From positions 1,684,587 to 1,748,586 of the forward strand of contig MU058868.1 in assembly GCA_013265495.1 (NCBI GenBank): a stretch of 64,000 nt of DNA. The letters are read 5' to 3'. Below the pieces are notes generated by a model. The model was not told the origin of the DNA. It searched no databases and worked only from the letters and a program-made list of their open reading frames with translations. This document shows, in pieces, positions 2,884-58,200 of the stretch. Positions within the stretch are counted from its first letter, which is position 1. Every line of letters starts with the position of its first letter. The stretch is from Vicugna vicugna. Taxonomy: Eukaryota. The position numbers were made by a program, and so were the translations under genes.

Positions 2884-3325
2884 TTAGTGCCCTGGGGCTG
2901 CCACAGCCTGGGCGGCTGCAACAGCACAAGTTGATGGTCTGCGTTCGGAGACCAGAAGTGCGAGATCAGGGCTCAACAGGGCTGGTCCCTGAGTTGTGAG
3001 GGAGCCACTGGGCCAGGCCTGTCCCCCCGCTGCTGGTCTGCCGGCCATTTTAGGAGCCCCTTGGCTTGTCGATGCAGCACGTAAGCTGATCTCTGCCTCC
3101 GTCTTCACGTGGCAGTCCTCCTGTGTGTGTGNNNNNNNNNNNNNNNNNNNNNNNNNNNNNNNNNNNNNNNNNNNNNNNNNNNNNNNNNNNNNNNNNNNNN
3201 NNNNNNNNNNNNNNNNNNNNNNNNNNNNNNNNNNNNNNNNNNNNNNNNNNNNNNNNNNNNNNNNNNNNNNNNNNNNNNNNNNNNNNNNGCATGAATTTCA
3301 GAGGCACACAGTTCAGCCTGTATAC
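2884..3325 (+). mobile_element. MaLR (MLT1-type) solo LTR, interrupted by N gap
   Basis: ttagtgccctggggctgcc...ggagaccagaagtgcgagatcaggg...tctctgcctccgtcttcacgtggcagtc...gcacacagttcagcc. Confidence 0.7.
3132..3288. other. N gap (157 nt)
   Basis: Run of n inside a MaLR LTR. Confidence 0.99.
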
Positions 3326-4639
3326 CCTTCTCTCTGCTTTTTCTGCCTCCCTCTGGGCACTTTCCTCCTGCTCATGTGTAAGTAGATTTCTGTCATGGCA
3401 CCAGGAGTGTTTAATTACATCTGGGTAGCGTCTCCTCATTTTGTAATTGTTTTATCTCTGGTGCCTTGCATGTAATGTGGAAAGGAGCTCCGGTGGAGGT
3501 ACGTTAAGTACCAGGAGTTGGTAGAAATGAAGGAAGACGCTGCAGAGGGCACCTCTCCCCTTGCTCTCCTATTGACAGTTCCAGCAGCTGTCAGGAGTTG
3601 GGCGTAAGGTGGCCCAGGACACCAGCAGACGCTACCACTTTTATTACCACATGAGCATATTTGATGCCTCTTGGTTTATTTCCCATGGACTGGTAATTCA
3701 TTACCACCTGGCAGCCATTTTGCTTTCTGAGGTGTGTTTTAAGAGCACATAGAAGCTGACAAGACCCTCTGGATCTTCTAGCTTACGGTTTACCCAGAGA
3801 ATTTTGTTAATGGTCACTTTCTTGTTTCAGCTTTTGGTTTGAATGTTCCGTTTTTAGGGATTCAAAAGTAAGTCACGGGAATGGTTGGAATAGTTCGCAA
3901 AATGTCTGTGCCAGGAGGGAGATGCCAAGAAATAACTGACTCTGCCCCAGAGCTTCAGAGTTAGCTCATTAGATACGTTAGAGAAGCAAAAGTTTGTCTG
4001 TTCTCTGATCTGAGGTTTAGTTGCACGTCAGTGAGGATGAACCGCCTCAGGGCTGGAGTACCTTGGCTGCGAAAGGCACGTTTTTATTTCCAGAGTAAGT
4101 CACATGGTAGGCAGAGTGGTGTCTTCTGGGATGTTAGTAGAAGATTTGGGTGGTGAAGTCTTAAAATTTCCATTCACCCCAGTGTCAGTCTGAAGGCGTG
4201 TGCTGAGATGTGCTCACATGAAGGCAGTGGAGACCAGCGTACGTAAGGTCTGGAGGCACTGTTTTCTCGGAGCAAGGAAGATCCTGGAGTATTTCAGAGA
4301 CACAGAATAGAACTGTTTCGTGAACCCTGTTTTATCCTTCATCCAGCTTCCACAGTTGCCTCGTGGCTGGTCTTGTTTATTTGGGTAATGCATACTCTCT
4401 CCCTCAACCCTGTCTAAGTTTAGCCAACTCCAGATCCGTAAATACTTCTGTATGTATCTAATGCAAACATAATAATATTACACCTAAATTTTTTCACAAT
4501 AGTTCCTTAATGCCATCCAAGTCCAGTTAGTATTCAGATTTCTAATTGTCTCAAATGCCAGTCTTACATTTTTACGTTGTAATTTATTTGAGTCAGGATC
4601 CAGCTAAGGGCCTCCTGTCACCTGTCATGCTTTAATCAG

Positions 4640-7990: not shown

Positions 7991-7993
7991 CTT

Positions 7994-8424
7994 ACTTTTT
8001 TAGTTGCTGATTTAACCTTTTAAAAAAAACACACCTACTTTGCTTATCCTCTGTGGCTTGAGGAACTGTTGTTCACTCACTCGTCATTGAAACTCTGTCT
8101 GTGGCTTCTGAGACTCTTTCTCATCTTGCCTTTTGGTCCTTTCCTTCTTGTTCTTAATGTATTCAGATATTGTAATTTAGATACTGTTACATGATGGAAG
8201 CTGTTCTAACTTTTTTAGTTGCTGATTTAACCTTTTAAAAAAAAACACACCTACTTTGCTTATCCTCTGTGGCTTGAGGAACTGTTGTTCACTCACTCGT
8301 CATTGAAACTCTGTCTGTGGCTTCTGAGACTCTTTCTCATCTTGCCTTTTGGTCCTTTCCTTCTTGTTCTTAATGTATTCAGATATTGTAATTTAGATAC
8401 TGTTACATGATGGAAGCTGTTCTA
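7994..8424. repeat. Near-perfect tandem duplication, 215 + 216 bp
   Basis: 7994-8208 equals 8209-8424 except A8 versus A9 in one homopolymer. Confidence 0.95.
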
Positions 8425-30600: not shown

Positions 30601-33600
30601 CTGGAAGATTCTCACACCATGAGAAGCATTTCATTTTAACAGATACAGTCGGAAGAAATGCTAAGTTGTTTCCCAGTCAAGATACAATTCCACCTTTTCA
30701 AAGAGGGAGTGAATCTGTATTTTTGACTGTGAGCCATGTAGTAAATCTGAGGTCTGAGCAGTGCCTCTAGTTTTGGTTTGGCATATAAAGGGGAAGGTAA
30801 AGAAAAAACCTTACCTTCTCAGGATAAAATTCTGTGAAGTCCTGGGCGGTTTATCCTGAAGTCATGGAGATTGCTCAGGAGCCCCGTCTCTCTAAGCGAG
30901 AGGAAACTGGAGTTAATGAGGCCTGTGTTTTTCTGAAGACACGCCTTTTACAGCTGAGCCATCACTCTTCTCACCCTTCCGCGCAGCGCGCCCGTAGACG
31001 GAGGAGCTGCCGGCGCAGGCGTTTTCCTGTCTCCCTGAGGACAGTCACGTAATGGAGCAAAACAACAGCTCCGCTCAGGGACTGTCACCGCCCTTTTTTG
31101 AATGTATTAAAGGAGTGATTGCTGATGAAGGTGGCCCCCCAAAGAGGAGAATCACCCAGAGGGAAGAGCGTTCTCGAATAGAGAGGGACGTTTCTAAAGT
31201 ACTTCAGCGAGGGCCGTGCAGGCCGCGGACTCACCTCACAGGACAAACCCTGTGCCATCCTTTCACATCTCAGTTCTCTCATGTTCATTGCGAAGGTGCA
31301 GTGAGTGACCTGGTCCGGATACGAGTGCGGGTCAGGAGTCCTGGCTCAGCATGGCACTTGGCCCGGCTGGGTCCTCATCGGAAGGCTGTGCTGGTGGACA
31401 CCGCGCTCCCAGACCCTCAGTCGCAGGCGGAATTCAGGCTCTTAGGGCTCCGGGAGCCGCGGCAGCTTGCGCCCTGGGAGCCCGCGCGGCGGGAGGGTGC
31501 TCTCCGGAGGGCTCCTCGCCCTGTGGAACGTGTCCCCCCACCTCTGCTGAATCCTGCTGGTTTGAAGCAGGTCACGGGTCCTGCTCACTCCCTGGGAAGG
31601 CCTTTCCAGGAGGTGGGGACCTCGGGGCCCACTGTAGTGCCCGTGTGGGACAGCTTCCCATTGCCGAGCACGGGGGGCGATTGAGACGGCACCCGTACCT
31701 GGCCGCCTGGGGGATCAGCAGGCAGGCTGCTCGGCGCCGGGGGCCGGGTGCTGGCAAGGAGGCGTGAGTTCGTGGGGGACGTGTTTTAAAACATAGTAAA
31801 TGGTCATGAGACAGCGCTAAAGCTTAACTCGAATGTTACAACGTTCAAAGGTAAAGTGATTTTGCCAAGAACCAGCTGATCTTCCCTAAAGATTATCACT
31901 GTATTTAAACTGTGATTTAAAAGGTAGAAAAAAGAAGTATTAAGCAGGTTGATTAACGTCACTTGCACCGTGGCCAGCAGCAAGTAGACCCTGACTGTGC
32001 TTTTAAATTTTAGCTCAGTTGAGATACGTGTACGCAGAAGAGTGCACTGTTTAAGTGTTTACTTTATTAATTTTTAAGAACTGACACAGCAGCACCCAGA
32101 TCAAAAAACACCACCAGCTCTCAGAGCCCCTGCCCCGCCTTGAGTCTCTTGCCCCGTCCCAGGGGCGGCCCCGTCCTGCCTTCTGGCAGCAAAGACTGGT
32201 TTTGCTGCTTTTTGTACTTTTTATAAACGGAATCGTATTTGTGTTCTTGCACATTTGGTTCCTTGGGCTCCACACCCTGTTTGTGATTCACCCGAGTGTC
32301 GCGCCTCGTGGTGGAGAATCCGCTGCTGTGTGAATGCACCGCAGTTGCCCATTCTGCTGGCGACGGGCTTCTGGGTGTCCCCCACCTGGGGCTCTGGGCC
32401 GAGTGCTGCTGCCAGCATTCTGATTCCTGCCTCTTGGTGAACGTGCTTGCGTTTCTCTTGGGCATGCTTGTAGGAGTGGGGTTGCTGAACCATAGCTGTG
32501 CTTATATTCAGCTGTGGGAGACATCTCCACACAGTCCCCCAAAGTGAAGCTCTGTGTTGAGATCTGGAATACTGACTGTCTCTCGCTCTCTTTGGACCCT
32601 AGGGTTACAGAACTGGCTACCCATATCGATACCCTGCTCTGAGAGAGAAATCTAAAAAACACAGCGATGTGGAGGTCCCTGCGAGTGTCACGGGTTACCC
32701 CTTTGCTAGTGACGGTGACTCGGGCACTTGCTCGCCTCTCAGACACAGTTTTCAGAAGCAGCAACGAGAGAAGACAAGGTGGCTGAACTCTGGCCGGGGT
32801 GAGGATGCTTCTGAGGAAGGGCCGNNNNNNNNNNNNNNNNNNNNNNNNNNNNNNNNNNNNNNNNNNNNNNNNNNNNNNNNNNNNNNNNNNNNNNNNNNNN
32901 NNNNNNNNNNNNNNNNNNNNNNNNNNNNNNNNNNNNNNNNNNNNNNNNNNNNNNNNNNNNNNNNNNNNNNNNNNNNNNNNNNNNNNNNNNNNNNNNNNNN
33001 NNNNGCTTCGGAGGCTTTGGGACCCAGCCCACCTGGCCCAGGTTTAAAGCGAACCTCCCTCATTAACCTTCTTCAGCCTGAACCCAGATCCACTTTAGGC
33101 GTAGCTGTAATTCAAGTAATTCTCTCTGCTTGAAACTGCTTAAGATGCATTGTCCCTCCTCGGTAACTGAGCATCACCTAACTCCGCACACAGCACAAGT
33201 TCCCCGTAACTCACCTGTATTAACCTCAAAGTAGGAGCTGTCATTCAGTTCGAATTGTGTTAGAAGAATCTTTGAAAAAGGTAGTTGAATCGTAACCTGT
33301 TACTTTAATGCTGTAAATTCCAGCTGTTTCATTAAGTCATTAACCCAAGTCTGTTCTTTAAAGTCTTCAGTGTTTTCTTAAGCAGTTTTCCCTTGTGGCT
33401 CATGGGCGACTCCTCCTCGTACCCTGGTCCTTTCTCGTTAGCCTCCTTCCCTGCTTGCCGTCCCAAAGCCTCCGAATGCTCTCAGCCGGCTGCCTTCTGC
33501 ATGGACTGTTGCATGTGAGTAGTCGGCCGTGGTGGTGAGTCTTCTGACTCCTGCTGGGTGCGGCATGACCCAAGTGCAGCGCAGGCCCGCGACACACGCT

Positions 33601-36600
33601 GTGAGGGAGCTTCATGTCGGGAGTAGCGCTGTCCTGACAGATACTCCACTGCCCTGGGGCCCCCGCGTCCCTGCGCAGCCCTGGCCCTGGCCAGTCCACC
33701 GGCCCCTGCGTCAGAGCAGGAGAGGCCCTGGAGTGGAGTCTCCTGTGAGGAGGCTGAGGCCGGGTCGGACACGTCTCTGCATGACTAGTTCTGTAGGTGA
33801 AATCGGCTTTGAGGGCCTAAGAGAGGGGCACCAAGTAAGCCAGGTGGGCTTTCCTGCCGCCTTGTAACAGTCTTTTGCTTTGTAGATGTTTTTAAAAGAA
33901 AGAAGTTCTGTCTTCCCCAGGTGGTTCTGGTGTCTTCCTGATGCACAGTTGGGGAGAGAGCCTCTGTGCTCCTCGGGGAACGTGTCTCGAGGCCCAGGCT
34001 CTGCGTGAACATGGCGGGGCCCCGTCTCTCCTCCTCCCTGCTCCCTCCCACCCTTCTTCCCCCTCTCTCCCTCTTTTCTTTTTTCATTTCATTTGTTTAG
34101 TTTTTAATTTATTTTACTCGTTAAAGGGAGTGGGCCTAAAACCAACTTGCTGCTGACCGTGTGCGTACGCAGTGCTGAGTTCCTGTGATGGATTTCTCCA
34201 GAGTGTGTGCGCAGCAGCAGCTTTGAGCATTACTTACTGTTAGCTTGAAAACATTAGCTCACTGTAGGTATTTTAGTCACTGTGTACATTGAAGGGGAGA
34301 CCTTGTTCAGCTTTTAGATTTATTTCTTACTGTTCTGGAGTAAGACACATTCCATGCAGTGTTCCCAGGTTGGTATATTAATTTACAATAACTGTCGTTA
34401 AGTTCTCAAACGTGTTGAAGCTTCTAAGGTGGTTGCTTTGATGTTTTGACTAAAATCATGTTTACTGAGAAGCCGGAGCTATTCCTGCCTGGGAGGATAG
34501 CGGCAGTGAGTACCCGCGGCTCATGTCCATCCCACGCGGCCGCGCAGCGGCCCAGCATCCGACAGCCTCGCTGCTTTCTTGAAAGTCTCACATTTATGGC
34601 TATCTTACTGCCTCTGGAAAATATTCTGAAAGGCGTAACATTCGCTCTGTAAGATGGGCTCGTTTTAGTGTTCAGTGCCTATTCATGCCTGAAAAACTGA
34701 ATTTGATGAAAAATCGCATACTGGATTGGAGGTCCAAAAATAAACGCTGGAGTGCAGGCACGGTGCGCCGGTGATGCGCGCTGATCTCTGAAACAGCCTC
34801 CGGGGGGGCTCATGAGCGCTTCAAGTTTGTTTGGGACATTTTTGTGTCACTCCGAATTATTAAGTTATATAAAATATTTGACATCACCAAACTCCTCCAC
34901 CAGGCAGCTACTGTATAGTCTTCATACAGTAATTATCTTGGGTTGAAATAGCTACGCAAACAGTACGTTCTGGTGCTGCGCTGCATTTTAATGCAGACCT
35001 TTGGTGATGTCTGCTCGTGCCTCACCGCACAGAGTCTCCCCTCACCCGCAGCAGCATCACACCGCTTTTCATGACCTCATCATCTCATGCTTCCAGCCGG
35101 CTTTGGTGTCGATGACTCTCGGAGCGGTGAACCAACGTGCTCTGAAGGGTCCCCCGTGGCCAGTCTGAGGGGGTCACGGGGCGTAACCCATGTCGTGGCC
35201 TGGATTTCAGCTGGGCTTTCTGACTGGCGCATGCCAGTTGGTCACGACTCTGGCTTCCAGCATTACTGGTCTCCAGCCACCTCAGTGATGAGGCGCTGTG
35301 GGCGTTGGTTCACCCTCTGTGATGTTCAGTGCATGACCAGATGTGAGATAAGTTGGACAGACTGGATGCTGTGGTGTCACTTNNNNNNNNNNNNNNNNNN
35401 NNNNNNNNNNNNNNNNNNNNNNNNNNNNNNNNNNNNNNNNNNNNNNNNNNNNNNNNNNNNNNNNNNNNNNNNNNNNNNNNNNNNNNNNNNNNNNNNNNNN
35501 NNNNNNNNNNNNNNNNNNNNNNNNNNNNNNNNNNNNNNNNNNNNNNCCAGTGATGGGTGGACACTGCGGGAGGAGGCGGCCGGGTTGGGCGGGGGAGTGC
35601 TCGCTCTGAGAGGACTTCGGCTGCCACCACCGTGATGGCCGAGGTCCCCTCTGCGCCCTGCTTTGCTGTTGTGCTAACAAGGTGTGGTGTGGGAGCAGCG
35701 GGCGGTTTGGGCCCCATTCTTGAACTGGCACGCGCTCACGTAGCAGAGCAGAGTTGGCAGCCACAGAGCCTCTTCCCGGCAAGCACAGCCTGTGCCCCTG
35801 CCTTGCAGCATTCGTTGGAAGAGGTGTGAGTGTTTGGTGTGCTGGAGCACGAGGTCCACCAGTGTTCACGGTGGCACCTCAGATGGGCACACGGGGTGTT
35901 TCCTCTTGTGTCAGTGAGTTGGGTGAGGAACCTGTGCCTGCCCAGGCCCTCTAGGAGGTGCAGGGAGTCAGGAATGGGCCCTAAATCCGTCCCCTCAGAC
36001 TCAGGAGCTTACCAGGTGGGTTGGACCAGCGCCGTCAGGCAGGCGCAGGGTCACACAGGACCCGTTGGGGCGCTGGCGGGACAGAAGAGCGGCTTGTGTG
36101 TGACTGGGGCGGGCGCCTGCAGGGTGCGCCTTGCAGCTCAGCGAGCCTTCTCTGTGCTGTTGGTGTGTGTCTCCTTCTTGCCGTCCTCAGATTCGAGAGC
36201 AGAACTTGCAGGACATTAAGACGGCTGGCCCCCAGTCGCAGGTTTTGTGTGGTGTGGCGATGGACAGGAGCCTGGTCCAGGTGAGAGCTCAGAGCGTCTC
36301 TGGCCTTTGTGGGTGGTGGCTCTAATGACCGTTGGGAAAGAATGACAAGGTAAGTGTTCTAGGCAGCCGCTTACCTTTGTTAAAATCTTCATGGTGAGGA
36401 ATAACCCAGCCACTTTTCCTCGAGTTGGAGACCAGGCACACGCACGCCCACGGCCTCGCCCTCCCTCCGCCCGCTCCGCGGAACGCATGCCTGTGTGAGG
36501 GCGGCGCCCGCAGCGCCTGCTTGGGGCCCAGGCTCGTGGCTTTCGTGGTGTGTGGGTAAAGTGCTCGAGGCGGGTGGGCTCAGTGGACCTCGGCTCTTGT

Positions 36601-39600
36601 ACAACTGCTGTCCTCAGCGAAGTGCTGCTCGGGGAGGAGTGGTCGCAGAGGGTTCCTGTAAATGTGACGCACATTTACACGCGTTTCTGTGCAAGGGCTG
36701 CACCTCGTGGCACAGTGGAGGTGACTGCGTAAGTAGTTACCTCGGAAAGTCACGTTGCCACCGAGCGCTTTCAGCACCAGAGTAGGGGACTGCTGTTGCA
36801 TCGTTTGGGTTCGACCAGCCGTGCTCCCGGTTCTGGGTCCGTGTTTGCACGTGGCACCGCCATCCCCGCTGCGCTCGCTCCTGGGCTGTCTCCGCTGCAT
36901 GCTCTCAGCTGGCTCCATCCTGTGCTCTCATCGGTGTTTCAAAGCCGGGCCTGGTGGGCTCTGACGACTCAGTTTACTGTTGCAGGACGCGCCCCTCTCT
37001 GACTGTACGGAAACAATCGAAGGGCTCGAGCGTACAGAGCAGGCCTTTAGTCCCGCTAGAGCTCTCTCTTTTAGAAAGGTACACACTGCCCTGCCCCCCG
37101 CCACCGCCAGCACACCCTGCTCTTCCGCCTGCCCTGCCCCTCCTGTCTGCTCCCGCTCCGTACTGTCTTAGTTGCTGCAGGGCCTCTAAACGGACCTTTG
37201 AATTATTTGTGAGATTGTACAGAAGGTTCTGTTCTGCCTACTCTGTTCTTTAATGAAAACGTTTTGTATGGAATTTTTACGATTTTCAGCATTTGTGTGT
37301 TGTGCTGAGAAGTGGCTGGCCTTAGTGATGTGGTGCGTTTCTCAAGTTCCGCGTGTGATGGGTCAGTGCATGTCGGGGGGTTTTGGAAACGTGCCTTTTA
37401 CAATGTGAGGATCTCGAAGGCTCGCGTGGGTACACGGTGAGCAGTGTGGCGGTGCTCCCTGGAGAGTCTGCCTCTGCTTGCTCGGCCGTGACCAGGGATG
37501 TCACGAACATGGCAGCCAGAGTCTGTGTCATTTCAGAGGAATGGGAACAATACAGAACAGTTTGTGTCAGCCCTTGCTGATGAAATGTATTTTTACCTAA
37601 AAAAATAGAATCTTAGGTAATTGTTTAAAATGTTTCAAGGCGGGGAAAGACTTGGGAAAATTTGAAATCCCAGACTGAATTTCTCTAGCTGCACGTGTAC
37701 CTGACGTGCACAGCAGGTGGGACGTGCGTCCAGGATGACCTGCCAGGCAGAAGGAACCCCTCTGCGTGCTCAGGCTGCTGGGTGCAGAGCCTGGGGCCGC
37801 GCGGCTGAGGCCCCGTGTCCGTGGGAGGCCTCCAGGGTCCGCCCATCAGCCTGGGGCCATGCAGCTGAGGCCCTGTGTCCGTGGGGGCCTCTGGGGTCCG
37901 CCCCTCAGTGAGTTGCACCCCCAGCGAGGAGCGGGTCTGACCAGTGGTTCCGTGCGTCTGTCTGGCGTCCCCGCTGAGCAAGTTACTTTGCGTATTTATG
38001 TATTCATTCCGTGGGGCCCCTTTTTCCTTGTCCTTAGAATGTGCTTCCAGCGACCCTTCTTGGAGGAGCTTCTCGAGGAAGGGAGAAGATGTGTTCTCAC
38101 CCCACTCAGCCTGTTTTCGCGTTTGGTGCTCTGGACCGTGAGCTGTTGTGATCTGGTTGGTTCGTGACTCTTTACCTGGGGTGTGGGTGTGCGAGGAGTC
38201 CACGAGCCCAGGGGTGGGCCCAGGCTGGCTCACCGGCGTTGCTCTGCAGGCCCTTTGGCATCCTGCTGCTCCGGGTGGTTTCAGGCTGTTCTTGGGAGCT
38301 GGCAGGAGGGCCGCCTGGGAGCTGTACTGAAGGGTGCTCTGTGCCCAGCTCCTCGTCCCGCCACAGTGTGGCTTTTGCCCTGCCCGGCGGTGCGCAGGTC
38401 TGAGGTGTGACGCAGTCACGTGTGACTGCTTCGTGAGGTGTGTCTGCAGGAGCCCCGTGCCTGGCTGGGAAACGAGAGCCTGTGGGAGTGAAGTTCCGTG
38501 TCGCCCGTGTGGTCGGAGCAGCGTGCTGGCTGGGAGCGCTGTGTCCGGGGGAGTTAGCAGAGAGGGCTGCTTCCAGCTGGGAGGTGTGGGTGCCCCTGCA
38601 TGGAGCTCTGTTCCCGCTTCCCCCCTGCTCTCTTTCTGGTGCTCACATTGGCACCCTTGGTCTTTTCCCCACCGACTAAGCACATTTCATTTTTATGGCA
38701 AAAACGTGCTTTGGCTCCACTGACGCCCTTGGCTGGGGCCGTGTCCACATCCTTGGAGTGGACCCCGGAGTGCAGGTGGTGTTACGCCCGGAAGATGGCA
38801 CTGCTCACCAGGCACGCTGAATTCCTCCTCCACGAGCAAGAGGGACTAGGGCTGTTCACATTCTAAGCACGGCCCTCTCCCCGTTAGACGGGTGCGGCAC
38901 ACTTTCTTTGGGGGGACCTGAGGGGCAAGTGTCTGCGACTTGGGAAGTTGTTGCTTTTCTGGAGGAACTTTGGTTTCACCTCTCCCTCCTGGTGACGGCT
39001 GTCCACATAGGGCAGGGATGTCTTCTGATGGAGGAGGGGGCAGGGAGTCGCCAGCCACACCCGATGCTGCAGTTCCGGGAGGACACTGGGCCCAGCCAGA
39101 GGTGCTCTGACTTCAGCGTTGCACAGGCCAGCATGCGGCCTGAAGCAATTTTGGCTGCCTTCTGGACTTCACTGCAGGTGAATCGAGTTGTTAGAGCCCA
39201 GGGTGTGACAGTTTACACTGCAGGCTGTCCAGTGGAGGGAAGAGCTCTGTTGTCCTACTTGTGTAGCGCAAGGTTCCCTACTCCGTGTGTGCTGGCTGCT
39301 GTGTGGTGGAAACGTGAGGGGGCTTGGGGCTCGCCTTGTGGGGTTGCTTGGTGAACTCGGTGTTGAACACCTAGTATGTGTGTGGCCTAGCACCAAAAAT
39401 GTACATTCAAGTATGGGTAGGTTTTACTGATGAAAGCCTGATGCTCAGAGAGGTCAGGTCACCAGCCCAGGCTTGCACAGCTTCGGAGGTGGAGCTGTCG
39501 TCGCACACAGGCCGCATGGGTTCTGCTTGGAGCCTGTGGCGGGCCGGCCGAAGCGAGAGAAGCAGCGGGAGCCTCTCCGGGGAGCGCCGGTCCTCCCTGG

Positions 39601-48924: not shown

Positions 48925-51900
48925 CTGTGGGGAGACAGGCGATGATGGCCGCTGCGCCCAGCCTGATCACAAGTGCCCCAGGCCCCGACGTGGCAGGAGC
49001 GGACGCAGGAGGCTGAGGGGCGCTGGAAGGGTCTGCATGGCCTTCACCGGGGGCCAGCAGCCCCCGTGGCCTGGCCTGACCCCCCCCCCAGGGTGCACAG
49101 TGCTCCCCGAGTGCCGTCCGGTGGCCCTCACCTGAGGCGGCCACCATGGGCCCCAGTGCCCTGGCCAGGGCGCCCAGGCTCCGCAGCGTGCCCATGACTG
49201 TGCCCTTCTGCCCGGGTGAGCCTGCAGGAAGTGCGGGGAAGGCTGTCAGGTGCCCATCGGCCCGTCCCGCCCGGGTGGCCTGGGGCAAGGGAAGAGCCTC
49301 TCACCATAGCCGGCGACCACGGAGGACAGACAGGGCACCACGACAGCGGCGGCTGGTGGGGGGACATCAAGGAAGCGCCCATCAACCCAGAGGAGAGGCC
49401 GGCAGCCCATGACCTCACCCCTCCGGCCCCGGCAGGGCCACTCACCGAAGGAGTAGAGCAGCAGCCCCAGGCCTAGCACGGGCAGCGTGTGCCCCCAGCC
49501 GATGAGGAGGAAGGCAGGGAGGAGCAGCAGGATGGCCTGCAGGTGGCACAGCAGATCTCAGAACCAGCCCTGCTGCTTTGGCCAGTGCTCAGGACACCCT
49601 GCCCCCACGTCCAGGGGAGCCCCCGTACCCGCTTCACAGCTGCAACTTCCCTGCCAGGGCTGATCCGTCGGGCGTAGGCGCCCTGGATGGTGGCCATGGT
49701 GAGGCCGATGAAGAAAAACATCTTTCCCTGCTGTAGGCTGCGAGGGGGGAGCTGTCAGCGCCCCTGTTCTCATGCGCTGAGCCAAGCAGCCTGGGCGACA
49801 GCCTGCTGGTCACCCGCCAGCCCCAGGATCCTCGCTGGGCCCCGGGGGATGGGCCAAGGTGGGAGTCAGCCCTGAAGCGATCGGGCTGGGGGCCGCCAGG
49901 ATGGGGAGCCTGCAGGGCGTCACCAGGCGGGTCCCGGGAGGGGCCCCAGACTCCCACCTGCTGAACCGGAAGCGCTGGTGCACGAGGAAGCTCAGTGTGT
50001 ACTCCAGGCCCGAGAACAGGAAGAGGTAGAGGAAGTAGACCAGGCCCAGGCGGCGCAGGCTGCCCAGCCCTGGGGAGCAGCAGGGAGGGGCTGTCAGGGC
50101 CCCCGGGGCAGCCCTAGGGGGCCGCAGCCCCACCCTCTCGAGGGGGCCTGCTCCTTACTGACTCCAGTGGGCGGGTCTGGGCCACGAGCCACAGCGGAGA
50201 AGCGGAGCAGGGCCAGGGGGCTGAGCAGGTCAGCAGCAGCTTGGAACCCCAGAGTCATGGAGGGCGCCTGGAGAGGATAGAACTGAGGGCCCTGGCAGGA
50301 GCTGGCCGCGTCCCCAGGTTGGGCAGTGCAGGGATGGGCCTGACCTGAATCTCCCATCCACCTGCCATGCCTAGAGGGCAGAGGGTCTGGGGAGCCAGGC
50401 GCCCCAGGAGGCCCTGTGGTCCCAAGAGCCTCTGGACATCAGGAAAGGACAGCCCGGCCAGCCTGGCCCGTGGGGCTGGCACACACAGCCGGCACCCCTA
50501 CAGGCCCTGGAGCTGAGGCGAGCCTCTGCACCTTCAAGTCATGTCCTTCCGGCTCCCACCTTACCCGCTTCTCCAAGGGCAGAGTCTCCGGCAAGAAGCA
50601 GAAGATGAACAGCAGGTCAGAGATCGCGAAGAGCAGGGCCAACCAAGGTGCCGACTCCAAGGGCAGGGAGGCGCCGAGCATAGGGCCCAGCGTGAAGCCC
50701 AGAGAGAAGGCCACCCCGATGACTGCCTGGGGAGAAGGCTGCCTGAGCCAGGCAGGAAGACCCAGGCGCCCCTCCAGCCCTCGGCCCCCAGCGTGTGCAC
50801 TCACCATGCCCCGGCTACGGGCGGCAGGTGAGCCCAGGTCGGCGACAATGGCAGTAGAAAGGCTGACGTTCCCCTTGCTGATGCCCCCGATCACCCTGGA
50901 GGCCAGGAAGGCCGCAAAGCTCTTCGAGGCAGCCCACACGGCATACGAGGTGGCCAGGCCTGCCTGCCTCAGGGCAGGGGTCGAGGGCAGGTGCGGTCAC
51001 TTGAGGCCAGGAGGGGCCCACAGTGGGCCAGAGAGCCCAGGCAATACCCCTGGGACCCTGCCCTGTTCTGGGGCATGCAAGGACCCCTGTGTTCCCCGTG
51101 TCCCCGTGGCAGGAGCAGCTCTGATACAGCCTGGCTTAGCCACAGGAGCCACCGCCCCCTCAAACACCACCCCCAGGGGGAAGTGAGGGCCAACAAGGGA
51201 CCGTGAAGGGCCCACAGCTGCCCCCCCAGAGCACTGCGGGGCGGGGGGTGGGGTGGGAGGAGCCCCTACCCGTGGGCACCCGTACCAGAGATAGCAGCAT
51301 CACCGGGCGCCTTCCTAGGCAGTCAGAGACGGCCCCCGAGAGCGGTGCGGAGAGGAACTGCAGGACGGAGAAAACTGAGCCAATCAGACCTGGAAGAGAC
51401 AGAAGTCAGTCACCACAAGGGTCTGATCAGGCTGGGCCCCCCTGTATTCTCAGGCCATGGGCCTCCAGCTGAGGTGGCCCCAACAGTATGTGGACATCAC
51501 TTGGAAAGGTGGCAGACAGGCCTGGGAATGAGAAGATGTGGACCAGAGCCTGAGACTGACAGGCGCCCAGGGGCAGGAGGACGGCCAGGGCCAGGAAGAC
51601 AGTACCCTAGTGGGCCCACCATGTGGGCTCAGGGCCATACCTCCAAACAGGACGCTGTTGTATCTCTTCTCTGCGGGCATCCCGATGGCTGCAGCAAACC
51701 AGTCCACTCCTCGCTGCCATGAGCCATAGAGGGGATCCTGGGGGATGAGGAAGTGTGACGAGCTGGGGGGGGGGTCCCCGATAAGGCTTGGGGCAATCAT
51801 GGGGCAGTTATGGCACGGGGGCAAGGAGTGAAGGGGCATGGAGACTGGCGGAGGCTCACGTGGGACCGGCCATGGCTCTCCAGCAGCCCGGGCAGCAGGG

Positions 51901-52033
51901 GCAGCAGCAGAGTGAAGGCCAGGAGGTCCAGCAGAAGGCCGAGGAAGACTACGGTGACCACGCGGGTTTCGGATTCCGGCTGCTGGCGGATGGGTGGGCG
52001 CGGGGTGCAGCTGCCTCCGGCTCCCCAGCCCAT
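48809..52033 (-). CDS. MFSD10: Major facilitator superfamily domain-containing 10 (TETRAN), 12 coding exons, 1371 nt, 456 aa (span)
   Basis: MGWGAGGSCTPRPP...VVTVVFLGLLLDLLAFTLLLP...SDCLGRRPVML (MFS motif A)...LLWDPRPPAQTRKAE*; all introns GT-AG, phases close, no internal stop. Confidence 0.97.
49132..49221 (-). CDS. MFSD10: MFSD10 coding exon 11
   Basis: GSPGQKGTVMGTLRSLGALARALGPMVAAS, 90 nt. Confidence 0.93.
49305..49352 (-). CDS. MFSD10: MFSD10 coding exon 10
   Basis: AAAVVVPCLSSVVAGY, 48 nt. Confidence 0.92.
49446..49536 (-). CDS. MFSD10: MFSD10 coding exon 9
   Basis: AILLLLPAFLLIGWGHTLPVLGLGLLLYSF, 91 nt. Confidence 0.93.
49629..49737 (-). CDS. MFSD10: MFSD10 coding exon 8
   Basis: LQQGKMFFFIGLTMATIQGAYARRISPGREVAAVKR, 109 nt. 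Confidence 0.93.
49958..50069 (-). CDS. MFSD10: MFSD10 coding exon 7
   Basis: RLGSLRRLGLVYFLYLFLFSGLEYTLSFLVHQRFRFS, 112 nt. Confidence 0.93.
50159..50267 (-). CDS. MFSD10: MFSD10 coding exon 6
   Basis: APSMTLGFQAAADLLSPLALLRFSAVARGPDPPTGV, 109 nt, donor gtaagg. Confidence 0.92.
50565..50726 (-). CDS. MFSD10: MFSD10 coding exon 5
   Basis: AVIGVAFSLGFTLGPMLGASLP...FCFLPETLPLEKR, 162 nt. Confidence 0.94.
50805..50963 (-). CDS. MFSD10: MFSD10 coding exon 4
   Basis: AGLATSYAVWAASKSFAAFLASRVIGGISKGNVSLSTAIVADLGSPAARSRGM, 159 nt. Confidence 0.93.
50986..51155. repeat. Inverted repeat arm A (170 bp) in the intron between MFSD10 coding exons 3 and 4
   Basis: Reverse complement of 52216-52386; about 10 substitutions plus 1 indel by hand alignment. 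Confidence 0.95.
51286..51389 (-). CDS. MFSD10: MFSD10 coding exon 3
   Basis: GLIGSVFSVLQFLSAPLSGAVSDCLGRRPVMLLSL, 104 nt. Confidence 0.94.
51641..51737 (-). CDS. MFSD10: MFSD10 coding exon 2
   Basis: DPLYGSWQRGVDWFAAAIGMPAEKRYNSVLFG, 97 nt. Confidence 0.94.
51860..52033 (-). CDS. MFSD10: MFSD10 coding exon 1
   Basis: ATG in strong Kozak context (ATCATGG), 174 nt, donor gtgagc. Confidence 0.94.
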
Positions 52034-52215
52034 GATGGGGACCGCTCCGATCCCGCCTGGCTGAGCGTGTGGCGGGACTGCATGAGGGCACATTGCACGA
52101 GGGCACATCTGGGTGCCCCAGCGCCCACGCCCACCTACCATGGAGGGAAACAGTCTCCCACCTGCCGCCGTCTCCACCCTTCCCCCGACTGGCTTACAGC
52201 CAGCGCGCACCTAAA

Positions 52216-52386
52216 GCGGTGGCTCCTGTGGCTAAGCCAAGCTGTATCAGAGCTGCTCCTGCCAAGGGGACACTGGGAACATAAGGGGTCTTTGCATGCT
52301 CCAGAACAGGGCAGGGTCCCAGGGGTACTGCCTGGGCTTGCTGGCCCACTGTGGGCCCCTCCTGGCCTCAAATGACCGCACCTGCC
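52216..52386. repeat. Inverted repeat arm B (171 bp) upstream of the MFSD10 ATG exon
   Basis: Reverse complement of 50986-51155, sharp boundaries at both ends. Confidence 0.95.
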
Positions 52387-52399
52387 GGGGGAGCCGGTT

Positions 52400-53350
52400 A
52401 CCCAACACTGCGGTACTTCTGTGCGCCCTGCCCTCGGCTCTGGGCAGCAGATAACGCAGGCTGCGAAGGTTGTGCAAAGAAACCGCAGCTCCAGAGGCCA
52501 ACCGTCCAGGGGCCGGGGCGAAGCATCCCAGCCCCAGACACCTCCCCGCCGCCGCCCACGTCCCGGTGCGGAACGGCCTGGGAAACGGAGGCCCGCGCGC
52601 GGGGCGGGACCTGGGCGGGCGCAGGGACGGCCCCGCGCTCCGGAGAGCACGACCCCCGCCCACCCTGGACCGCACGCCCCGCCCCGACACCGCTCCGCAC
52701 CTGCGGTAGCCGCGCGCTCGGAACCAAAAGACAGAAAGACCGACAGACACAGGACGGACCTCCAAGCAGGATGGGCGCGCCGGCTCCGCCGCGCCCGGAA
52801 ACGAGCGGATCTGCCACGCCCAGTTGCGGGCGGGGCTTCAACATCCGGAAACGGGCACGACCCGACGCTTCCTCTTCCGGCCGCCGGGAGGGGCCCGAGC
52901 CGGACTCCGAGGCAGCTAGCTGCGTCCCGGCGGGGAGGGGTCCGAACGGAGGTTCCCGACAGGCCGGAGTCTCGTTTGTCCAGACTTTGCACCCGAGGGG
53001 GCGACGAGACCTGCCTGCTGAGGACCTCGGGCCGAGGGCTGTAGGGTGAGGTCCAGCCTGGCCGGACCCTCCACTCCCGCCGAGACGCACCACGGATTCG
53101 CGGGCTTGCCCGCACCTGCGTCTCGGCCGGACAGGCGGGTGAAGAGGAGCAGGTGCTCCCACCGGCCGCACTCGGGCCGGGGCCAGACCCCCGCACAGCT
53201 GGAGGAGCTCCGGGCTGCAGGACACCTGGCCTGCACCACCTCCCGCTCCTCTCCCGTCTCCCGAAACCCACGCCTCCAGCCGAGACGACCGGAGGCAAAC
53301 CGGGAAGGGCATCCCGGCAAGTGGAAGCGCCACGGTCCCCCCCCTTGTCG
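52400..53350. promoter_or_regulatory. CpG island, MFSD10 promoter (probably bidirectional)
   Basis: Very high CpG density; GC boxes (gggcgg) at ~52590-52620; ETS-type CCGGAA/CTTCC cores at ~52795, ~52845 and ~52867-52879; candidate minus-strand 5'UTR donor CAG|gtgcgg at 52701/52700. Confidence 0.8.
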
Positions 53351-54850
53351 ACTTGGCACTCGTACCCCCCTCTTTAAATTCCCAGATAAACATAATCGCA
53401 CTCACACTTCTAACATGCAGTTGTTCCACCTCTGACCCCAAAGAACACCTGTTAGCTCTTTCCCTAAAGAGGACACGTTCCTTCATCCAGGTTTGGGCGC
53501 CATTCAACTCTTCCCGCCGTTCACGCCCCCTTTAGACGCCGGAAACTGGCCTACTGGAGAGAAGCCTAAACACTTCTCACCTTAAATGGCAGGGGAGGGG
53601 CTGAGGGAAAGAAGAGCTGGATAACCTACATGCGTTTTCATATCGAAGTACTCAGGACAGCCCTCATTTCTACACCTAGCCAGGTGGTCACAGCTGGGTT
53701 TCATAACCACCTTCTTCCAGGACCCATTCTACACACACCTCCTGCAAGGAGTAGGAGGCTGGGCTGGATGGCCATCTACGTCCATACTAGAATCTCCAAG
53801 GGTTATGTCTGGAGAGGTCAGGGAGAGGCCCAGGGTGGGCAGAGGCAAGTATGCTCGGATGACACACGATCCAAAGCTGGGGCTTTGTGAGTTGGTGCTG
53901 GCACGCTCCTTTCTCACAGAGCTCAGTAGCAAGGCCTGGGCCCGAGAGCCCTGTGGCCTGGCGAATTAATGGAGCAACAGCTGCACGAGAGTTCATCCGT
54001 GGTCAAGCCTGTACAATGCTACCAGCAGGCCAGGGCTACACAGCGAGGAGCTGAAGCGGCCCGTCTGTGGAGCTGACCAGCGCCAGGGCTGCGGAGATTT
54101 GTGGGGCACACACCTGTCAAGAATCCTGGGGAGGCGGGTAGGATGCAAGTACCTGATCGAACGTGATCCCTTCATTGGTCCGTTTCAAACCCAAGGCAAC
54201 CTTGGCTGGAGCCCGGCCTGCCACCAGGGGGCGCTCTGGCCCTGTGTTCGCATTCTGAGCTCCAACACTGCTGGACCCTCCAAACTTGATTCCCCCCACC
54301 ACCCTGTTTGGGAGAGCCAGATTCCGGGCCTGGTCACCCTCTTGGTCACCTCCTCCTTGTCCAGTCTGGCTAGCCCTCAAATCTCCCCATGGTTGCGGCC
54401 ATGGCTTGTGACGTCAGCCACGTGACCCACAGTCACCTGGGGAATGAGGACCCAGTGTCTTGTCCTAGGAGACTGGGACGGGGCGTGGGGGCTGAGGGAC
54501 CCACCCTCCCCAGCCCCCTACTCAGGGACGTGGCCCTGTGCAAGGCCATGGCCCCAGGGCTGCACGGACGGGTGGGCAGCCAGCCTCCTTTGTCCTTGGG
54601 AAGCCTCCTGGTTAGAGCAGAGGAAAAGTTGGCACTTTGTTAACTTACAAGCTTAACCATAACCTCTGGGCCTTCCAGCTGAAAATTACTGTGGCCCAGA
54701 ACTGCCCCATGGGTCACTGTGGATGCCGCCCAGCCCCTCCGCCTTCCACAGCCACCACAGCATCAAATTAAGACAGAACTGGGACAAGGCCAATCATGGC
54801 AGCTAGGGTGCTGGGGTCATGGGCGAGTTCTAAACTGTCTGCAAACTCAT

Positions 54851-54874
54851 TTCATTTGTAAATGAAAATTTATG
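54851..54874 (-). terminator. Candidate non-canonical NOP14 polyA signals (CATAAA 54874-54869, AATGAA 54856-54851)
   Basis: No AATAAA or ATTAAA found on the minus strand 53400-55140; UGUA elements upstream and a GU-rich tract downstream. Confidence 0.45.
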
Positions 54875-55141
54875 TAAGTTAACACTCCAAATTCTACACA
54901 TGAAATTGTCCAGAGTCAACTGTGACTAACGGAGGTTTGTCTGGGCACGAAGAACAAAGGTCTTTACAGTGTATTCGCACACAGCTCTCACAGAGGCTGG
55001 GTCCTAATTCCCAAAGTGCAGCTCTTCAGGAGAGAGGTCTTAACAGGAACTGAAGCACAGGGAGAAACTCTCACTGCCCTTACAGCGTCCCTTACCACCT
55101 TCACTCCACGGAACCTCCTTGTCTAACTCATAAAACACGAC

Positions 55142-55241: not shown

Positions 55242-58200
55242 CTTGGGAAAAAAAAGCCATTTTGGATTAGTTTTTGGAGGATGTCTTGCCTTTTTCGTGC
55301 CTGTGTCTGACCCAAGAGCGGTTCAGAAGCACGTGGAGCTGCAGTGACGGAAGCTGCCTGCCCCGCCCCAGCCCAGCCCCTGCGTCCAGGTCACGGAGGG
55401 GCCGGGCCCTCGCCCTGGCTCACAGCAGCCAGCCCAGCCCGGCGGCCCCTCACCGTTCCGTGATCTCCGAGAGCTGCATCCGAGCCAGGAACTGGTTGTC
55501 CCGGCGGATCTCCCGGACGGCCCCCCTGAACTCCCGCTTGTGCTTGTGGATGAGCCTCTTCCTCTCCTGCTCCTCCTTACTGCTCCCCTGCTTCCTCCCA
55601 AACTCCAGGCTGAAAGCGGAAAGCCTGCGTCAGGAGGCGGACATGGAGCCCAGGTCTGACCCAGAGCCGGCAGGGCCTCAGGTCAAGGCTGCCCAGGCCC
55701 ACGGCCCCGCTCCTGGGCCCCTCCCGGGACTGGGGAGCCCCGCTGTCCTCACACTCTGACCAGCCGGGGGGTGAACAGCTTCAGCGGCACCGGCTTGCTC
55801 TTCTCACAGACCAGCGGCCGGCAGAGCTGCGCCTGAGTTTCCATCTCCGTCAGTGCGCTCTGCCCCAGCTCCTGAAAGGCACACAAGCCCACGCTGACCG
55901 CCGGATGCTCCTCCCCGGGGCCGTGGCTGCCTGGGCTGCTGAACGGAGGAGCTGTGCTCACAGACAGCGGCTGTATGTCTGGCCGGATCGGCTCCCGTCT
56001 TCCTGCCTACAGGGGAGGGAACCTGCACGACTGGGAGGCCTGCACCCTCCTCACAGTGCCTGGCATGGCCGAAGTCCAACCCACGGAGGCACACACATTG
56101 GGGACCAAGCCCATTCATACACGTGGGAGCTTCCAGGCTTCCCTGAACACCACAGTGGGACCATCCTCAGAAAACCCGTGTGGCCTGAGAGGGATGCGGA
56201 GCCTGGAGCCGCTGTCCAGGCCCCAGAGGGCAGTGGGCGGGGGGAAGGGGCACCGAACTGCCGAACAGTGTTAACAACCTTCAAATAAAATTGCAGGTCC
56301 TAGCTCAGCTCAGCAGGACAGTGGCTTCTCGCTAGTTTTCCCACGACTCTAATGTTCCTTCCCACCGGTGTTCACGGTGTACACGTGCCGTCCTTGGTTT
56401 CAAGGGCTGGAATCTCAACGGCAGAAACGCACTCACCTGTCCCCCGCCCCCCCCGCCCCGTCACAGAAACGGCCGCGCTGGGCCAGGGCCTCACCTGCAG
56501 CTCCCGGGGGTGGCTGCCGTCGGCCAGGTGCTCCGTCAGGAGGGCTCTGAGGGGCCTCACGATGTCGTGGAAGGATGGCAGAGCGCCATACACGCGCACA
56601 CAGCGCTCCACCAGGGCCAGACACACGGCCAGGCAGGATAGTCTGCAGGGGCGAGAGGAAGGGCCACCTCGTCCTTTCCGCCACCAACAGAGCCAGTTGT
56701 CTTGGCAAGTGAAACCCTTCCACACGCCGCTCTGAAGCGCCCAGTGTGGGCCGCAGACACTGAGGTCAAGTATTGGCCGCGCGCAGCGTCGGCAGCAGCC
56801 AACGCCCGCAGTATTCGGAGCTAAAGAAAACACCGCGTTTCCCAGAGCAAGGATTGTAGAGCGGAAAGCAGGAACAACCTGGAAAGAGTGGCTCTGCTGT
56901 AGTTAGTCTTCTTTTAAAGAGGAGAAAATCGAAGTTTAATAACAGATGGGAGAGACCTAGGAGAACTGACTGACTTGCCACAATGGCCGAAGTCCTCATC
57001 TTAAATAAATCCCATTTCAGTTTTTAAATAATTAAAACCATCTGCAACACCAAGCAGGTGTATTTTGAAACTAACATACACCATTCTGGAGAAAAAAATG
57101 GCCATCAGGACTTGAACAGACATTACTCCGAAGAAGATTATGAATAAACACATGGAAAGATGCTCAACATCACTAAATGATCTGGGAAATGCAAATCAAA
57201 ACCAAAATCACACCCATGAGGATGGCTAACATCAAAAAAACAGAAAATACTAAGTGCTGACAAGGATGTGGAGAAACCAGAGCCCTTGTGCACTCCTAGT
57301 GGGAACGTAAAATGGTGCAGCCACGGAGGAAAACAGTATAGAGGTTCCTAAAAAAGAAGAGAGCTACTGTATGAGCCAGCAGTCCCACTTCCGGGTATGA
57401 ACACAACTGAAAGCAGGAACCAGAACAGACACTCGTACACCCACATCCACAGGAGCACTACCCAGAGTGACCAAAAAGTGGGNNNNNNNNNNNNNNNNNN
57501 NNNNNNNNNNNNNNNNNNNNNNNNNNNNNNNNNNNNNNNNNNNNNNNNNNNNNNNNNNNNNNNNNNNNNNNNNNNNNNNNNNNNNNNNNNNNNNNNNNNN
57601 NNNNNNNNNNNNNNNNNNNNNNNNNNNNNNNNNNNNNNNNNNNNNNNNNNNNTCCTGTATGATTCCACCCACGTGAGGTCCCGAGGAGTCAAGTCCACAT
57701 AGGCAGAAAGCAGACACTGCTTGCCGGGAGCTGGGGGAGGGTGGGGAATTGTGACAGAGTTTCCGTTTGGGAAGATGAGTGAGTTCTGGAGGTGGCTGGT
57801 GGTAATGGTTCCATAACAATGTGAATGCACTTAATGTCACCAAACCGTACATTTAAAATGGTTAAGATGGTAAGTTTTATATTATCTATATTTTAACACA
57901 ATAAAAAAATTTTCAAATAATTCATATTTTAAAAAATCAGAGAATGAAAGGACTTACAGGAAAAAGCCCCAGCCCTCTCCTCACCCTGCCACTTCTCCTA
58001 CAGACTGAAGCTGTGACCCCACAAAATTCCTGCGCTGGAACCTAAGCCCTAGCGTGATGGTCTGTGGAGGTGATCAGGCCTCCCAGCCCACGAACAGGGA
58101 TGTGTTTCCATCTACTTATGTCTTTGATCATTTCTTCCAGCAGTGTTTTGCAGTTTCGCTGTATAAGTCTTCTACCTCCCTGGTTCAGTTAATTCTTAAG

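Follow-up and report, generated by a model that had tools for sequence, protein, structure and literature searches.

A reverse-complement copy of an MFSD10 intron segment, confined to camelids among the species compared and probably made by template switching, brackets the start-codon exon together with its source

In a 64,000-nt stretch of the Vicugna vicugna genome (assembly GCA_013265495.1, contig MU058868.1, positions 1,684,587 to 1,748,586; hereafter the window), the minus-strand gene MFSD10 carries two inverted, complementary arms of about 171 nt in two different introns, and these arms bracket the exon with the start codon and the next two coding exons. One arm (arm A) was found to be the ancestral intron sequence, and the other (arm B) a reverse-complement copy that is present in alpaca and dromedary and missing from all of the outgroup loci compared. 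Taken together, the evidence makes it probable that the structure is an inverted duplication of MFSD10's own intron, generated by a template switch on the camelid stem and decaying neutrally ever since, with an effect on RNA that would be at most a low-level by-product.

The segments 50986-51155 and 52216-52386 were aligned by BLASTN as reverse complements of each other, with identity at 160 of 171 positions and a single-base gap (E = 1e-72). The two arms differ by 10 substitutions (seven transitions and three transversions) and one indel, as the original prediction had counted from the letters alone. A self-repeat search divided the repeat into two abutting inverted pairs, 50986-51088 with 52284-52386 (103 nt, 94%) and 51079-51155 with 52216-52292 (77 nt, 91%). 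The edges of the repeat are sharp, and the flanks beyond both ends are without homology. Arm A (50986-51155, minus strand) forms the 3' arm in the pre-mRNA and has single-copy orthologues at the matching intron position in outgroups. Arm B (52216-52386, minus strand) is the camelid-specific copy in intron 1 and forms the 5' arm. The spacer between them is 1060 nt long (51156-52215, minus strand) and contains coding exons 1-3 with their two introns; exon mapping thus bore out the earlier claim that the repeat encloses the ATG exon and two further coding exons. Most of the 322-nt intron preceding coding exon 4 is taken up by arm A, which stops 22 nt short of the acceptor (about 20 nt had been estimated) and, as had been proposed, covers the branch-point region. 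Arm B lies 159 nt from the acceptor of the ATG exon and arm A 130 nt from the donor of coding exon 3, and the GC content is 61-69% across the repeat. Each arm includes the 15-nt palindrome GGCCCAC-A-GTGGGCC that had been noticed before (51015-51029 in arm A, its twin at 52343-52357 in arm B; BLASTN), and this palindrome is conserved only in part among outgroups. By word-7 BLASTN with each arm, no third copy was detected within the window, the next best match being 14 nt in length, and an Rfam scan of 49000-55000 gave no match at E <= 1. The view that the arms belong to no recognised repeat family was strengthened by both results and by the single-copy orthology of arm A.

Orthologous loci were reached by searching a window exon open reading frame against protein representatives, and then through the full-length orthologue and its cluster members; the genomic loci were compared with their introns included. 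The alpaca assembly GCA_048564905.1 carries a 7.7-kb stretch with 99.8% identity to the window, and no difference falls in the arms; the window thus comes from an alpaca or a very close relative. Both arms are present in this assembly (locus L011), with an arm-to-arm identity of 93.6% as in the window. In dromedary, arm A was found at 3880-4050 and arm B at 2633-2803 (locus L001), and these arms are 95.9% identical. Among DNA runs, more than 20 independent ones under three organism labels contain 0.93-0.96 of the sampled words of 50900-52450. Arm B is absent from every outgroup locus. A single-copy orthologue of arm A was identified in pig (L002, 3838-3986; about 80-81% by BLAST), hippopotamus (L005, 3837-3998; about 81% by BLAST), gray whale (L006/L007, in L007 at 3828-3998; about 88% by BLAST) and the bat Rhynchonycteris naso (L010, 2289-2458; 79%), always at the position and in the orientation of arm A. 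The elephant locus (L008) gave no detectable match to arm A, and in mole (L009) the intron is only about 100 nt long and the arm A segment is missing. An inverted repeat of the arm sequence was found in none of the outgroup loci; in mole and bat only short, weak and unrelated self-inverted matches were detected.

Alignment of intron 1 revealed a clean camelid-only insertion, with a gap at the orthologous site in whale, hippopotamus and pig. Between conserved flanks the whale has GCAGGCAGACCC, and camelids have CTCCCCC and the 171-nt arm followed by the conserved TTTAGG flank. CTCCCCC and arm B together replace about 12 nt of outgroup sequence (GCAGGCAGACCC in whale). This heptamer, read in the sense direction, forms the upstream junction of arm B (52387-52393, minus strand; 7 nt) and is either filler or a diverged remnant. 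In the same alignment, neither a target-site duplication nor a poly-A tail was detected at either junction of arm B. At seven columns of the arm alignment, all four camelid arms share a state that is absent from whale, hippopotamus and pig. Arm B was therefore copied from arm A of the camelid lineage and not from elsewhere. Two changes specific to arm B, at columns 105 and 131, are common to alpaca and dromedary, indicating that the copy predates the camel-llama split.

The comparison of orthologous introns that the original prediction had suggested thus dates arm B between two speciation events. The firm bounds, as placed by sequence comparison, are the parting of camelids from pig, hippopotamus and whale on the older side and the camel-llama split on the younger. 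In the arm alignment, besides the seven changes common to all camelid arms, two changes fall between the duplication and the split (over two lineages) and 14 after the split (over four lineages), so that the former interval is about 0.3 of the interval from the split to the present. Published estimates place the camel-llama split at about 16-25 million years (My). On these counts the duplication would have taken place roughly 20-32 My ago, a figure with a very wide error that rests on two substitutions. Between alpaca and dromedary, arm A has diverged by 2.9% and arm B by 4.7%, with 4.4% for the whole 8.6-kb locus. The variable columns number 16, of which 14 are single-lineage changes and two are fixed between the paralogues. 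Compensatory changes, looked for in the camelid arm alignment as the original prediction had suggested, were not found: within a species, co-variation was seen at none of the 16 variable columns, a count with few sites and little power. The seven transition differences in alpaca give G.U in three cases and A.C in four in the transcribed strand, as predicted by chance. The arms thus appear to drift apart at about the neutral rate, and this evolutionary pattern argues against selection on the duplex.

As to its origin, a single event on the camelid stem would have copied the 3'-terminal portion (about 171 nt) of the intron that precedes coding exon 4, with intron 1 as the target. The copy would have landed about 1.06 kb upstream in reverse-complemented form, displacing about a dozen bases. 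In agreement with a four-point template switch, what was inserted is a reverse-complemented version of sequence found close by at the locus, and it displaces the bases between the switch points. We infer replication with a template switch and return, or templated break repair, rather than transposition, because the junctions are without target-site duplication or poly-A tail and no further copy lies nearby.

For the bracketed gene, exon positions were re-derived from the sequence and by tblastn of alpaca MFSD10. The exons are 97-100% identical to isoform X1 of Vicugna pacos where the match is wholly exonic, and the dromedary MFSD10 matches them less closely than does the alpaca protein. All lie on the minus strand. 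The ATG exon (51860-52056, 197 nt; tblastn 100%) has its start codon at 52033, its acceptor AG at 52058-52057 and its donor GT at 51859-51858. It is followed by coding exon 2 (51641-51737, 97 nt), coding exon 3 (51286-51389, 104 nt; donor GT at 51285-51284) and coding exon 4 (50805-50963, 159 nt; acceptor AG at 50965-50964). The acceptor of coding exon 4 is a tandem one, CAG/GCAG/G (50960-50965), of which the annotated protein takes the upstream AG; were the second AG taken instead, 4 nt further downstream, the reading frame would shift. Directly upstream of the ATG-exon acceptor, the 15-nt unit TGCACGAGGGCACAT occurs twice (52079-52108) and in dromedary three times (L001, about 2910-2960), and older alpaca and camel models begin an N-terminally extended open frame within this repeat stretch. 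The normal protein of 456 amino acids remains the principal annotated product and is annotated from several transcripts in alpaca and both camels, which speaks against a selected role of the repeat.

The 3' part of the 5' non-coding exon 1 was placed at 52701-52844 (minus strand) by mapping the alpaca isoforms X2 and X3 to the window. Two donors were recognised for this exon: CGCAG/GTGCGG at 52701/52700, used by isoform X3 and conserved in whale, hippopotamus and pig, and the alternative GGAG/GTCCGT at 52760/52759, used by isoform X2. In the NCBI models, X2 is spliced from 52760/52759 to 52056, and X3 from 52701/52700 to coding exon 2 with the ATG exon skipped. Isoform X3 (660 amino acids) has a 262-codon open frame through the CpG island and the 5' exon (53486-52701) and then enters coding exon 2 at 51737; it may represent read-through or a model artefact from the upstream 3' end of NOP14. 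The CpG island that holds the promoter extends over about 52400-53400, with an observed/expected CpG ratio of 0.77-1.05, and, read in the direction of transcription, precedes arm B. Both exon-1 donors lie upstream of arm B and inside the CpG island, so that arm B is intronic by these models and the two arms should be part of one pre-mRNA. Co-transcription of the arms, on which the proposed RNA effects had been made to depend, is thus likely on the basis of the gene models and the conservation of the donor. The 5' end of arm B reads GGCAG/GTGCGG (52376-52386, minus strand), with the same 9-mer as the true exon-1 donor. This donor-like sequence had been pointed out before and is indeed there; it is unused in any model found and reads GGCAG/AT in dromedary. 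As a candidate for the real exon-1 donor it was rejected, since the model donors lie 314 and 373 nt further upstream and its GT is lost in dromedary.

Folding of the pre-mRNA was next considered. In a 1471-nt segment of the alpaca pre-mRNA, the minimum-free-energy fold and the centroid fold alike predict pairing of the arms over their whole length, and 165 of 171 arm positions are paired in the dromedary fold; the duplex that the original prediction envisaged was thus obtained in silico. The calculated duplex energy is about -378 kcal/mol for alpaca and -393 kcal/mol for dromedary, compared with -63 and -82 for self-folding of the alpaca arms, and the longest uninterrupted Watson-Crick run is 31 bp for the alpaca arms and 56 bp for those of dromedary. 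Complementary inverted segments in two different introns, intron 1 and the intron before coding exon 4, thus flank three exons, namely transcript exons 2-4 (the ATG exon and two more), and the circle predicted from these exons is 398 nt in size. As judged from such matches elsewhere, a duplex of about 171 bp, if both arms are present together in a nascent transcript, would favour back-splicing of this three-exon circle, exon skipping or ADAR editing, and the duplication may yield a circular RNA (circRNA) as a by-product. That the duplex makes a camelid-only, ATG-containing circRNA of 398 nt, a skipped transcript or a heavily edited double-stranded RNA in amounts enough to lower the linear output of MFSD10, a conserved transporter gene of the housekeeping type, appears improbable. 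In the literature collection searched, no paper linked MFSD10 to circRNA, a search on camel circRNA returned unrelated plant papers only, and no camelid transcript contigs were found by a search with the N-terminal 178 amino acids of MFSD10. In RNA runs, the share of words was 0.25-0.29, slightly above the roughly 0.22 estimated for words of exons only; this would fit exons with a small retained intron and is silent on the presence of either arm.

Other origins of the pair were weighed against a template switch. Two insertions of a dispersed repeat in opposite orientations, such as a short interspersed nuclear element (SINE), a MIR-like element or a DNA-transposon fragment, would also leave inverted arms, and part of the arm may bear a weak resemblance to the 3' region of MIR. 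In mammals, the majority of intronic reverse-complementary matches have arisen in this way (PMC8516420). The chance of such an origin here is nevertheless very slim: the arms have no third copy in 64 kb and no Rfam match, arm A is orthologous single-copy intron in pig, hippopotamus, whale and bat, arm B shares the seven camelid derived states with the local arm A, and both arms lack target-site duplications and poly-A tails. Inverted duplications are also known as products of some long-read and amplification methods, and one arm might then be a fold-back or a chimeric join. The arms, however, differ at 11 positions where artefacts would be near-identical; the structure is found in two alpaca-type assemblies, in the dromedary assembly and in contigs of more than 20 independent DNA runs; and the two arm-B-specific changes are common to both genera. 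An assembly artefact, the misassembly that the original prediction had warned of, was therefore ruled out, its probability being negligible. It is also conceivable that the repeat acts at the DNA level, as a cruciform or replication obstacle, as a substrate for inversion of exons 1-3, or as a pair of arms kept similar by gene conversion. Arms of 170 bp with a 1-kb spacer are able to recombine, and columns 57 and 122 (see below) would fit a conversion from A to B on the camel side. Yet the orientation of the spacer is the same, and the gene intact, in alpaca and dromedary, so that the inversion suggested earlier has left no sign in either, and such an inversion would destroy the gene. Gene conversion would need two separate tracts, as the putative converted sites have the two fixed paralogue differences between and next to them, and homoplasy is simpler, one of the two sites being a CpG. 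A DNA-level role is for these reasons regarded as very unlikely.

A further possibility is a selected RNA switch, in which the duplex loops out three exons to give a regulatory circRNA or a skipped non-coding mRNA and so tunes MFSD10 expression in camelids. With 159 and 130 nt between the arms and the back-splice acceptor and donor, the geometry comes near to that of repeats, both engineered and natural, that form circRNA; the predicted folds show a long duplex of great stability, and by the gene models both arms should belong to one transcript. Furthermore, neither camelid lineage has lost the repeat, arm A and the branch-point region of the next intron overlap, and alpaca isoform X3 skips the ATG exon. 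The skip in X3, however, drops the ATG exon only and not the three bracketed exons, and divergence at the neutral rate is what simple retention for about 20 My also predicts. Compensatory substitutions are lacking, and wobble and mismatch outcomes are balanced. The host gene is GC-rich (61-69% across the repeat) with short introns of about 120-700 nt, whereas parental genes of circRNA are typically GC-poor and long, with long introns (PMC8516420). Intron 1 could, in addition, be removed before arm A is transcribed. Annotation in seals, a pygmy sperm whale and bats likewise includes isoforms that lack motifs of at least one among the first three coding exons, and of the outgroups compared, gray whale and a different bat are without the repeat; models of this type are not creditable to the repeat. 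We consider a selected switch unlikely, and an RNA-level effect, if any, is most likely a low-level by-product, as judged from the pattern of sequence change.

Several observations weigh against a neutrally decaying template-switch duplication. GGCAGG occurs in the outgroup target and is also the hexamer with which the arm begins, but this possible upstream microhomology is interrupted by an additional 7-8 bases (CTCCCCC); at the downstream junction the overlap is only 1 nt, so that microhomology at the switch points is ambiguous. Template switches catalogued in primates span some tens of bases and draw on sequence close at hand. Unlike these, the MFSD10 event comprises 171 nt taken from about 1.1 kb away, and is closer in scale to switches of the fork stalling and template switching (FoSTeS) or microhomology-mediated break-induced replication (MMBIR) type, or to templated break repair. 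At columns 57 and 122 (52339 and 52274 in arm B), the outgroup base persists in alpaca arm B, and alpaca arm A and both dromedary arms have a derived base in common; this pattern could reflect homoplasy or A-to-B gene conversion in the camel lineage. The small power of the compensatory-change count is to be added on the same side, as is the unusual conservation of arm A, by which the copied piece may itself carry a function.

With respect to this conservation, the MAFFT alignment of the locus gave an alpaca-whale identity of 89.3% for arm A with three gapped columns, 88.5-90.7% for the neighbouring exons, and 70-77% with many gaps for the two segments that lie wholly within introns between coding exons 1 and 3. 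The identity of arm A was 81% to hippopotamus and 82% to pig in the same alignment. Arm A may carry splicing signals for the downstream exon.

Elsewhere in the window, the strongest self-match is a direct tandem repeat of a 219-nt unit with 99% identity (7991-8424), and a tandem pair of units of about 61 nt with 87% identity was observed at 37788-37908. Four runs of N, each 157-180 nt long, are located at 3132-3288, 32825-33004, 35383-35546 and 57483-57652.

To our knowledge, nearly all mammalian intron pairings that circularise exons come from transposon pairs, which are hard to date or to compare between species. For the MFSD10 pair, both the source and the target were identified, and its birth is bracketed by two speciation events; pig, whale and hippopotamus, comparable species that lack only the second arm, offer natural arm-less controls. 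The locus is thus a test case for whether a strong intron-intron duplex is enough to bring about back-splicing or skipping where the gene is compact and GC-rich and its introns are short and fast-spliced, and for how large and far-reaching template-switch duplications can be. If circRNA formation, skipping or editing does lower linear MFSD10, the locus would represent a datable before-and-after experiment on the birth of a circRNA from a non-transposon template switch; if there is no RNA effect, all that is left is a structural variant, neutral and fixed in camelids.

Inverted pairs of Alu or other SINE sequences, and short repeats found sufficient in minigenes, reportedly flank circularised exons, as described in 2014 by Zhang et al. 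and by Liang & Wilusz and in 2015 by Ivanov et al. Unlike these pairs, the MFSD10 arms are not transposable elements, and one of them was copied, in inverted form, from an intron of MFSD10 itself. Reverse-complementary matches between introns that flank circularised exons are also described in PMC8516420. For C. elegans, a preprint reports that such matches promote both back-splicing and exon skipping (bioRxiv 10.1101/2021.02.28.433292). The MFSD10 arms resemble these matches in that they are inverted and complementary, reside in two introns within about 130-160 nt of the splice sites that back-splicing would join, and are predicted to pair. They differ from the usual niche of circRNA in that MFSD10 is compact and GC-rich, and that its circle is only predicted.

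In the four-point model for template switches, a fragment gives way to the reverse complement of another one nearby (PMC5453318), and template switching has been proposed as a source of RNA hairpins (PMC8794818). As in such events, the target stretch in MFSD10 was replaced in one step and without target-site duplication, and the product can fold in RNA. Long inverted repeats of non-transposon origin are said to flank the exon forming a circular RNA in mouse Sry, a system associated with Capel et al. in 1993 and Dubin et al. in 1995. The arms of Sry are many kilobases in length and its circle is experimentally documented, whereas the MFSD10 arms are 171 nt and the circle is a predicted one. Like that of Sry, the MFSD10 repeat is lineage-specific, is not derived from a transposon, and brackets start-codon-containing coding sequence, probably within one transcript.

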